This document shows, in pieces, positions 59,901 to 62,900 of a stretch of DNA of 64,000 bases. This stretch comes from Bugula neritina (lineage: Eukaryota > Animalia > Bryozoa): contig OZ037765.1 of NCBI GenBank assembly GCA_964035545.1, forward strand, positions 23,497,504 through 23,561,503, in the 5' to 3' direction. The notes under the pieces were generated by a model. It made no database searches, was not told the origin of the DNA, and was given only the letters and a program-made list of their open reading frames with translations. Position 1 is the first letter of the stretch; the number at the start of each line of letters is the position of its first letter. A program made the position numbers and the translations under genes.

Positions 59901-62900
59901 AGGTCACTAACGCTTAATAGCATTTGAAGAAGAGGAGTTTTAGTGTTTTCCAACAGCTACTGCCCATCAGTTTTGTTGCTGAGACTTTACCTGTTTTGCT
60001 GCCAGTGTGTGTCTGTAAAGGTGCATTTATTTCAATTAAAAAGATCATTTTACTGAGCTTTCTTCCATTATGAAAGCAACTTTTCAAAATTCTGATCTAC
60101 TTTCTGGGACACATCTTCAGTATACAATCAACAGGAAGTATTTATCATTTTAGCTATCCTCTCTAGAAAATATTTTATATGTTAAATAATTTACTTAAAA
60201 GGTGTTGAATAAAGTTCTGAATTGTGTAACTTTATTAGTTGCCATTCTTGATAACCTTCTGTGCCATTGTTTCTTAATGCATCTTTTCAAAGTGCACCAA
60301 TTCAGCAGTCATATACTGCTATTAGAGAGTAACTATAGTTTCATTGAAGCTATAATGACCCATACACTTAACATCAAATACACATGTCAGCAGTTCCAAA
60401 GTTTAAGGTCCTCTCGAATACATTCTTTTTGTTTTTGCTTTGTTTCTGTTTTGATAATCGTTTGCTGCGACAATAAATGATTTTAAATGTGTAGTACTAT
60501 GTTTTATTTATTTTCAATAGTTGTTGAATATTGATAGGATCATTTCTTTATAAATTGATGAACTTAATCAAAAAATTAAAAGATTTTCAAGAAATTATTC
60601 ATAGACATTAGACTTAATACAATAATATTTTGTTGCTATTTCTATTGATAACTAAAAATGAGAAGAGAAAATAAATTATTTAGAATCAATACTCCAACAA
60701 TATTTTTTATATTCCTTTTGATAAATTGAACTCATTGGGATAAGAAAAATGCAATAAAAATCCTACACAAAAATACTCAACTCTGCTACAGCAAGAGTAT
60801 TTAACAATCAAAATTAAAAATAATGCTAACCATTAAAAAAGAGATGCACTCTTTAGTCTATTGTTTTAATATAAATCATGGTTTTATTTTCAGAAATTGT
60901 TTGTCACTTGTATTATCTCCCCAGTTTCTATTATTAATTTAAAATTATTGTCAATCATAGGAACTGCAATAAGCTGAAACGTCGGCAATTAAGTTTCGCT
61001 GTATCTTGGGCAAAATAATCGTGTGGCCCTAGTCCTCCCCCCCCCCCCAGGTTTATTATCGTATTTTGACGCCAATTGTTGTCAGAAATGAAATTGTTAT
61101 CAGAATTATCCATAAAATTGCATCCAAGGAAGTTAGATTAACTAAAAGTGGGCAATTTGTTCATAGAACACCTCACGTTTTATATCTTTAGAGACCTGTA
61201 TAAGCGGTTAGTATAATCCCTGGTACCAAACATACTTCAACAGATAGTAGAAAGTTATAAGTTACTGCAAGTAAATAAAGGTTTTACAATAATAAAATTT
61301 TAAAATGAAGGTTTTATAATTCTGGTAAACTGAGCATAGCAATCAAATAGGTATGCTTTCATGTTCCCTGCCCTCTAGTATCAACTGGTTGAAGAGGCTC
61401 TTTCTCCCTGGATAGTCTGTCAATAACGTTAGTGTTGAGTGAATAGCATTAGTCTTGGTGGAGCTGCCAATTGAGTTTTGGATGTTCTGCCTAAATGACT
61501 AACAACTCCTTAACACCCAAGAATTTATGTTTAAACGCATTTTTATGATAATTTTGATAATCCTAGTACGTTTACTGTTGCCCATTTTACCTGAGTAAGC
61601 AGGTTGTATATAAACATTGTTATAATATTCCTATTCTGTCAAGTGAATGTTTATGTTTTATTTTTTCAGTGCATATTGAAAATGAGAAGATCTTTGCTGA
61701 AAGCTTAGAAAACTATTCGTTAATATACCAAACAGACTTTCCTGAAATTTGTAAGTAATGGTTACGTTTTTATCATTTTTCAGGCCACTGAACTTGTAAG
61801 GAGTTTATTATATAGGTTTTATTAGGTGAACTCTAAACTTACAAAACTTGTGGAAATGAACTTAGTGAAGTTGAATGGCCAGAAATAGATAATATATTCA
61901 CATTAGTTATAGGCATGCTGCATATGGTGCTATAGATTGATTGTAGTAATATATGAAACATACTCAACACGCTCAGTTTTTAGGAGTGGTAGATTACACA
62001 TGTTTATTCTAGAGTTCAGCTACACAAAGCTGCAACTTAGTACAGACACAAAATAGGGCTGGTTTGCTAAACGAATAACTGCGACAGAGTAAAAAGCAAA
62101 TACTACTTAGCATTCCACTTTTCTATTGCACTTTTGTTCTTTTTTTCGAGTGATGGTTTAAAGTGGAATAGTTTTGAAATACTACTCGGATTTGGATTTC
62201 ATTATTGCGTGTGACAGGTAACTCCACACGATTTGCGCTCCCAGTAGCTAATAATGAACCGATTTAGCTCGACTAGGGCTGATTATATTTAGTATAGCTA
62301 TATATGAGCCTGTACTCACAGCGGTTCCATGGTGTAATGGTTAGCACTCAGGACTCTGAATCCTGCGATCCGAGTTCAAGTCTCGGTGGAACCTAATTTT
62401 TTTTCATATTTTCTTTTGTAGCAGAAGCTTTTATCAAGTTTGCCGTAGTGAGCAAAGAGCTATCAGCATTAATGAAGCATTTAGTAAGTTTCAGAAAATT
62501 CAATTGTCATGCTTTTTTCTCACCCTTTTTAATAAGTCTCCGATTTCTAATTTTATCAGAGTTTATCTAGTTTTATTTTTTAAAAGTTTTTATAAAAACT
62601 ACATACTGTTGTTCAGTCAGTATCAGTATGCATTTAAACAATACATTCCCATTACAAAACACAACAGTATCATACTACGAAATATAGCGGTTATACTTAC
62701 CTTCTATCATGAATTGCCACTATTAAAAGGTACTCAAATAACCAGGCTTGCATTAAAAGCTTGCATTGAAAGCATGTTGCCTTTTACAAACTATTTAAAC
62801 ATAACTTCAAAAATAAATAAAATGATTCACTCTCATTATTTGGTGAAAGCAAATTAAAATCCCTAATCCTGACTTCAATTTCGAAATTTTGCATAATGAA

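Follow-up and report, generated by a model that had tools for sequence, protein, structure and literature searches.

Introduction

Intronic box C/D small nucleolar RNAs (snoRNAs) are placed upstream of the branch point, from which their distance is fixed, and the ends of mirtron hairpins are themselves splice sites. The tRNA-like 3' ends of RNA polymerase II (Pol II) transcripts, as in MALAT1/mascRNA, are cut by RNase P and RNase Z. In Caenorhabditis, conserved pairs of an intronic tRNA and its host gene have been described, in which the host promoter affects expression of the tRNA (Sagi et al. 2016, PMC4999229). The nimtRNAs are intronic elements that resemble tRNAs, derive from mitochondrial DNA, and regulate splicing in a position-dependent manner (Hoser et al. 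2020, PMC7722341); in the same study, a cluster of nuclear tRNAs decreased the abundance of a reporter mRNA. Here we describe a tRNA-Gln(CUG) gene that lies in sense within an intron of an ASAP gene of the bryozoan Bugula neritina and ends 27 nucleotides (nt) before the next exon, termed exon D. The locus is contained in a stretch of 64,000 nt (assembly GCA_964035545.1, contig OZ037765.1, positions 23,497,504 to 23,561,503 of the forward strand), referred to below as the window, and coordinates without a prefix are positions in it.

Results

The trailer and terminator of tRNA-Gln occupy the 3' splice-site region of exon D

The window holds one tRNA gene detected by ARAGORN, a tRNA-Gln(ctg) at 62323-62394 (+), which shares the strand of the host gene. 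The Rfam model RF00005 matched it with 66 bits (gathering score, 29) over model positions 1-71, that is, over its full length. The original prediction had placed an intact tRNA-Gln ending at 62394, 27 nt before an exon starting at 62422, and direct reading, ARAGORN, and Rfam all agree with these coordinates. Direct reading after T62394 gives AA (62395-62396), a run of eight T's (T8; 62397-62404, +), a C, a pyrimidine-rich stretch, and the acceptor AG (62420-62421), which is the sole AG between the tRNA gene and exon D. The T8 run begins 3 nt past the tRNA and thereby supplies the four or more T's near the 3' end that characterize a terminator of RNA polymerase III (Pol III); the same run forms the 5' part of the pyrimidine tract of the intron. 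The prediction that T8 opens this tract is borne out. T8 is not the whole of the tract, since further pyrimidines, TTTTCTTTTGTAG, follow downstream, and together with the acceptor AG this remaining part spans 62405-62421 (+; direct read and spacer composition). The trailer and terminator of the tRNA thus occupy the branch-point and pyrimidine-tract position of the exon D 3' splice site, as had been proposed. The host intron, between exons C and D (61751-62421, +), measures 671 nt, with 572 nt before the tRNA and 27 nt after it.

A branch-point-like motif, CTAAT (62393-62397, +), is composed of the last 2 tRNA bases, the trailer AA, and the first T of the terminator. Its second A, at 62396, is 25 nt from the G of the acceptor AG, again as stated in the original prediction. 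Among eight cleanly defined acceptors of the ASAP gene, four have CTAAT at -11 to -35, against an expectation of 5.5% per such interval, and CTAAT looks like the preferred branch motif of this species, judged on the sequences of one gene. Copies of CTAAT ahead of ASAP acceptors lie at 63201-63206, 63581-63586, and L013:4981-5000. The copy at -25/-26 of exon D fits this local consensus, and the relatives described below offer nothing beyond A's at -18 to -31, in weak surroundings. An alternative branch candidate, TACTCAC (62313-62319, +), was noted by direct reading upstream of the tRNA; its use would require the folded tRNA to be looped out. When 148 nt of the pre-mRNA were folded locally, the cloverleaf was the minimum-energy structure, and opening of 62390-62397 was predicted to cost ~6.1 kcal/mol. 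The branch-candidate A's sit 1-2 nt beyond the RNase Z site, and the interior of the tRNA contains four AG dinucleotides.

Exon D (62422-62483, +) is 62 nt long, starts in phase 1, ends in phase 0, and is followed by a GTAAGT donor (62484-62489). Its in-phase translation, EAFIKFAVVSKELSALMKHL, matches a BAR-domain helix of a mollusc ASAP protein (P0005) with 56% identity and 94% positives (pairwise E value, 9e-7). The reading frame is unbroken from exon C through exon D to exon E. Skipping of exon D would join the flanking exons as T|GT TTC TAA and create an immediate stop, in agreement with the predicted loss of frame. By these features, and by a length of 62 nt and a phase shared with the mollusc and with both bryozoan relatives (below), exon D appears to be a real coding exon with conserved boundaries.

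The trailer of this gene is common among tRNA genes of the genome

The genome contains three Gln-CUG genes that are 100% identical and eight further Gln genes with an identity of 92-94% and the anticodon TTG. All three identical copies share the AA-T8-C trailer, with upstream flanks that differ, and the junction CCT|AAT is present in 9 of the 11 Gln tRNA genes. Forty other tRNA genes were sampled as well, and the majority of their trailers begin with A and lead into a T-run. Because other Gln copies carry the same trailer and junction, CTAAT plus the T-run must be regarded as standard equipment of the tRNA gene and not as something shaped by the intron. The copy studied here is probably a functional template for Pol III; the identical copies would mask the origin of the mature tRNA. 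TATA-like upstream elements and target-site duplications were sought, and nothing consistent was found. Retroposition of a U-tailed pre-tRNA into a pyrimidine tract was considered as the origin of the arrangement, and there is no evidence for it.

Two further observations concern tRNA genes of this genome in general. Five tRNA-Phe(GAA) genes (L037-L041) carry a conserved trailer of ~20 nt (ACTGCCAATCCTGGTGGCTG-like; the first 20-23 nt) ahead of the T-run, from which a conserved 3' extension on the primary transcripts is expected. A search of the whole genome with the Rfam tRNA model returned 18,702 first-pass candidates, 63 of which were scored; these candidates may constitute a large family of tRNA-derived repeats.

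The adjacency is maintained in deeply diverged relatives

Contigs of relatives were obtained from marine biofilm and bryozoan-associated metagenomes, with the open frames around exons F and E as queries. A metagenome scaffold of 2.9 kb (L025) contains exon C, an intron of 817 nt, an intact tRNA-Gln(ctg) at 851-922 (850-923 by ARAGORN), and the orthologous 62-nt exon, which starts at 945. The spacer between tRNA and exon is 22 nt long and reads GAAA, T5, pyrimidines, and TAG; ahead of the acceptor its only A's are the three directly after the tRNA, 18-20 nt from the AG. A contig of 8.9 kb (L022) begins inside the 3' half of the tRNA, as expected because repeats break assemblies, and its orthologous exon starts at 63 after a 32-nt spacer of ACA, T8, pyrimidines, and CAG. 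The partial tRNA of L022, of which only the 3' half is visible, matches the corresponding part of tRNA-Gln at 27 of 30 bases. Across the three species, the spacers are therefore 27, 22 (L025), and 32 nt (L022), and the expectation that relatives would keep the tRNA at about the same distance from the acceptor was confirmed when it was checked.

Only exons can be aligned between these genomes. Fourfold-degenerate sites differ at 23 of 32 positions between B. neritina and L025, at 25 of 32 between B. neritina and L022, and at 19 of 40 between L025 and L022; the first two values indicate that neutral sites are saturated. Against this background of saturated fourfold sites and unalignable flanking intron, the tRNA-Gln gene differs from its L025 orthologue at only 2 of 72 positions, one of which changes a U-A pair of the acceptor stem to U·G. 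The tRNA gene is thus under purifying selection relative to the flanking DNA. The isoacceptor in the orthologous intron of L025 is the same, as in conserved pairs of intronic tRNA and host gene. An adjacency in a single genome could be due to chance; judged from these comparisons, an adjacency shared with two deeply diverged relatives cannot.

In all three species the tRNA is oriented in sense and is directly followed by one to three A's, after which come a T-run of 5-8 and pyrimidines up to YAG; the spacers are 73-78% pyrimidine, and the acceptor is their sole AG. Spacer length and CTAAT have not been kept. The junctions read CCT|GAAAT in L025 and CCT|ACAT in L022. Since the trailer A's of L025 are the sole A's of its spacer, the branch point should lie at the trailer in all three species or else inside or upstream of the tRNA.

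The mollusc ASAP gene (L021, GCA_003991915.1) has a 62-nt exon in the same phase, preceded by an ordinary long pyrimidine tract, and ARAGORN found no tRNA in the 31 kb of this locus. It follows that the exon is ancient, that the tRNA arrived in a particular lineage, and that the two have long stayed adjacent. Other fragments of relatives cover neighboring parts of the gene: a search with the PH/ArfGAP exon gave fragments of at most 2.8 kb (L016-L020) that end short of exon D, and two contigs of a sibling (L023 and L024; 88.6% DNA identity) begin downstream of the site. Short-read contigs of relatives were seen to break within or at the end of an intronic tRNA (L022:1 and L071:1), and such breaks are a practical trap when cases of this kind are sought in fragmented assemblies.

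Other tRNA genes end just before exons

Elsewhere in the genome, at least three more tRNA genes are followed on the same strand, after 22-42 nt, by a verified exon, two in teneurin and one in a cadherin gene. A tRNA-Ala(CGC) gene (L026:8738-8811, -) ends 22 nt before an exon that encodes a teneurin EGF domain by Pfam; with its spacer it occupies L026:8717-8811 (-), equivalent to G000:C2 ~26705716-26705810. The spacer reads A, TC, T6, GG, T7, and CTAG, and ahead of the AG, A occurs only as the discriminator base and as the first base of the trailer. A tRNA-Ala(UGC) gene ends 39 nt before an exon of the teneurin YD shell (match to teneurin in the PDB; E value, 1e-10) and with its spacer occupies L053:562-672 (-), equivalent to G000:C2 ~26689412-26689522. 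The two tRNA-Ala genes share a strand, are ~16 kb apart, and probably belong to one teneurin gene. A sibling species, in which the exon is 97% identical, retains tRNA-Ala(UGC) at 44 nt (L070:1906-2021). In another metagenome contig, comparison of L072:760-780 with L070:1862-1922 revealed that 61 nt are gone, comprising the upstream flank of the tRNA-Ala gene and its ~17 first bases, with the adjacent exon identical; this gap is either an assembly artifact or a real deletion allele.

The third gene, a tRNA-Phe(GAA) (L041:559-673, -; context, L068:4900-5450, -), ends 42 nt ahead of an exon in which a cadherin repeat, split by the intron, resumes, and the acceptor is 17 nt past the start of the T-run. 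A further, probable case is a tRNA-Arg(TCG) (L047:601-800, +; context, L069:3534-4686), which is followed by 21 nt of T-rich sequence ending in CAG and then by an open frame of 35 codons up to a GT donor, located between two other plausible exons. A Pfam search with this putative exon found no homology, and the exon is rated as probable only.

The frequency of the layout was estimated from 40 of the best-scoring tRNA genes of the genome, taken regardless of their context; tRNA-Ala(CGC) was found outside this sample. Two verified and one probable acceptor-adjacent gene were present among the 40, against 0 of 40 in each of two mirror controls (a donor at most 70 nt upstream, and an antisense acceptor at the 5' end of the tRNA). 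The expected number of acceptor adjacencies is ~0.1 to 1.2, depending on the intron lengths assumed. The layout is recurrent; its enrichment is not proven and hinges on the intron-length model.

Structure of the ASAP host gene

The domain set typical of ASAP (BAR-PH-ArfGAP-ANK-SH3) is present in the right order on one strand, with exons for PH, ArfGAP, ankyrin, a Ser-rich segment, and SH3 located past the window on the same strand as exon D. A tblastn search with the mollusc ASAP (P0005) covered the locus in collinear order. Host exons were searched singly: Pfam returned matches to ArfGap, Ank, and SH3 and a weak match to BAR_3, and the closest solved structures in the PDB were ASAP2 and ASAP3. 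A genome search with the Pfam model BAR_3 gave no match at the ASAP locus, because the BAR domain of ASAP is too divergent exon by exon.

Within the window, the first coding exon (approximately 56992-57105, +) begins with MDTIAAFLSESWDDIKSPTTS and is followed by exon B (59757-59829, +) and exon C (61670-61750, +). Exon C is 81 nt long, ends in phase 1, has a GTAAGT donor at 61751, and corresponds to ~L025:36-127. Downstream of exon D lie exon E (63228-63352, +), which has CTAAT at -23 of its acceptor and accounts for the weak BAR_3 match, and exon F (63619-63748, +), whose surrounding open frame was the query that found the relatives. Thirteen probable RNA sequencing runs contain 8-12% of the words of 62001-72000, approximately the share of exons in this segment.

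Discussion

We favor the interpretation, to which we assign a probability of roughly 0.55, that the very 3' end of an ASAP intron houses, in sense, a functional tRNA-Gln(CUG) gene transcribed by Pol III and that the shared DNA is read in two independent ways. The 3' flank of the tRNA is physically the 5' part of the exon D 3' splice-site region. Pol III would terminate in the T-run, and in the Pol II pre-mRNA the same U-run, together with the pyrimidines that follow, would serve as the polypyrimidine tract. The branch point would most likely be one of the one to three A's directly 3' of the tRNA, whose distance from the AG ranges from 18 to 31 nt across the three species. With its A-rich start and its T-run, the 3' end of a tRNA gene would amount to a ready-made module of branch point and pyrimidine tract, and a tRNA gene landing 20-40 nt before an AG may be tolerated because its 3' end already is such a module. 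Purifying selection on the tRNA, on the terminator/tract, and on the exon, which leave almost no free DNA between them, would then freeze the pair of tRNA and exon. This interpretation builds on the anatomy of the locus, its persistence over saturated divergence, its absence in the mollusc, and the recurrence of the layout at other genes; it takes a dedicated regulatory role to be absent, as seems likely to us.

Several points weigh against passive overlap of this kind. Acceptor use, the branch point, and transcription of this particular copy by Pol III are all deduced from DNA sequence. The branch motif is good only in B. neritina, and the corresponding CUGAA of L025 and CUACA of L022 are poor matches. 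For U2 to pair at the trailer A's, the end of the acceptor stem must be opened, at a cost of ~6 kcal/mol in a simple fold, and this cost could argue for branching at a different site or for genuine interplay of folding with splicing. The long conservation and the recurrence also fit a selected function.

The opening cost predicted for 62390-62397 keeps alive two models that treat the fold of the tRNA as part of splicing. According to one, branching takes place upstream of the tRNA, with TACTCAC as one possible site, and the folded tRNA is a spacer that brings the branch point near the AG and hides the four internal AGs, so that the fold is needed for correct splicing instead of competing with it. 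Structured spacers between branch point and acceptor are known from yeast, the paired ends of the tRNA would reduce the effective distance from 62318 to the AG to ~30 nt, and the branch-like motif at the 3' end of the tRNA lacks conservation in the relatives; any model requires the internal AGs of the tRNA to be passed over. We consider such looping-out possible, if on the unlikely side, given that the trailer A's are at a canonical distance in all three species, that the trailer of B. neritina fits its preferred CTAAT, and that the upstream motifs are degenerate and not shared between species. According to the other model, folding of the tRNA competes with U2/SF3, RNase Z cuts after 62394 and severs the intron 2 nt before the branch A, and Pol III factors slow Pol II, so that the state of the tRNA or of Pol III sets the inclusion of exon D and hence ASAP output via frameshift and mRNA decay. 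The geometry is right for this, with branch-candidate A's 1-2 nt past the RNase Z site, a cloverleaf predicted in the 148-nt context, an immediate stop upon skipping of exon D, and a layout that is present in three lineages and recurrent. Intronic tRNA-like elements are also known to alter host splicing depending on their position, and the nuclear tRNA cluster mentioned above reduced reporter mRNA (PMC7722341). Regulatory coupling nonetheless strikes us as fairly unlikely at this locus. Exon D, whose boundaries are ancient and whose product is a conserved BAR helix, therefore looks constitutive; the signals that overlap belong to tRNA genes in general and are not tuned to the locus; and conservation is expected anyway where three constrained elements abut. 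Competition and looping-out make opposite predictions for mutants of the acceptor stem.

A broader version of coupling, which we hold to be distinctly doubtful, is that cheilostome bryozoans possess a class of "tRNA-capped" 3' splice sites, in which both the branch A's and the first part of the tract come from a sense Pol III tRNA gene and in which tRNA folding, processing by RNase P/Z, or Pol III occupancy gates the recruitment of U2, such that inclusion of frame-critical exons (ASAP, teneurin, cadherin) is tied to the state of tRNA or Pol III. The position of the tRNA might instead reflect a pathway in which the tRNA is made, at least partly, from the host Pol II transcript and released from the excised intron by RNase P/Z, in the manner of mirtrons or intronic snoRNAs. 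All cases found are in sense orientation, and the idea has been raised for intronic tRNAs of Caenorhabditis elegans, where the host promoter influences tRNA expression (PMC4999229). It seems very unlikely here: the terminator T-run present in every case and the identity to non-intronic copies fit ordinary Pol III genes, and a branch point 2 nt past the 3' end of the tRNA would hinder RNase Z until debranching. Finally, one tolerated adjacency per genome could arise randomly, and the tRNA might be a chance neighbor without shared signals or a decaying copy. This explanation is scarcely credible and is already contradicted, as the tRNA remains intact, has two identical copies elsewhere, is kept at the orthologous site in two relatives with saturated neutral sites, and is separated from the exon by 22-32 nt, too short for a separate branch point and tract.

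It is already known that intronic tRNA genes are common and that conserved pairs of host gene and tRNA exist. What appears to be new is that the trailer and terminator of a tRNA gene are the branch and tract region of an essential exon; a literature search of a limited library, which is no proof of novelty, retrieved no description of a tRNA gene that shares its trailer and terminator with a 3' splice site. Given its survival over saturating divergence and its recurrence, the layout is, at a minimum, fully compatible with splicing. It thereby offers a test case for a spliceosome confronted with a very stable RNA structure and with an RNase Z site only 1-2 nt away from the branch point, for the processing of tRNAs in Pol II transcripts before versus after splicing, and for the effect of intragenic Pol III complexes on Pol II. 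If the interplay is true, translation capacity would be linked to the output of specific genes; if it is not real, the locus would show that two expression systems tolerate such an overlap.

Like intronic box C/D snoRNAs and mirtrons, the tRNA-Gln gene is a small-RNA element whose position relative to the 3' splice region seems constrained, so that maturation and splicing may interact. Those elements lack a promoter of their own and depend on the host, whereas tRNA-Gln is an independent Pol III gene with its own terminator. Recognition and cleavage of tRNA folds within Pol II transcripts is a point in common with MALAT1/mascRNA, which differs in being a case of 3'-end formation of a noncoding RNA and not an element of a spliced intron beside a branch point. 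The locus resembles the Caenorhabditis pairs in combining a conserved intronic tRNA with a host gene, and interplay of host and tRNA has been proposed there; that work describes no overlap of a tRNA 3' flank with a branch point, tract, or acceptor (PMC4999229). With nimtRNAs it shares a tRNA-shaped element within an intron. It does not share their mitochondrial origin, being identical to two nuclear Gln-CUG genes and forming a canonical nuclear-type cloverleaf. Whereas nimtRNAs act best near the 5' splice site, the tRNA-Gln of the ASAP intron is a bona fide nuclear gene that abuts the 3' splice site.

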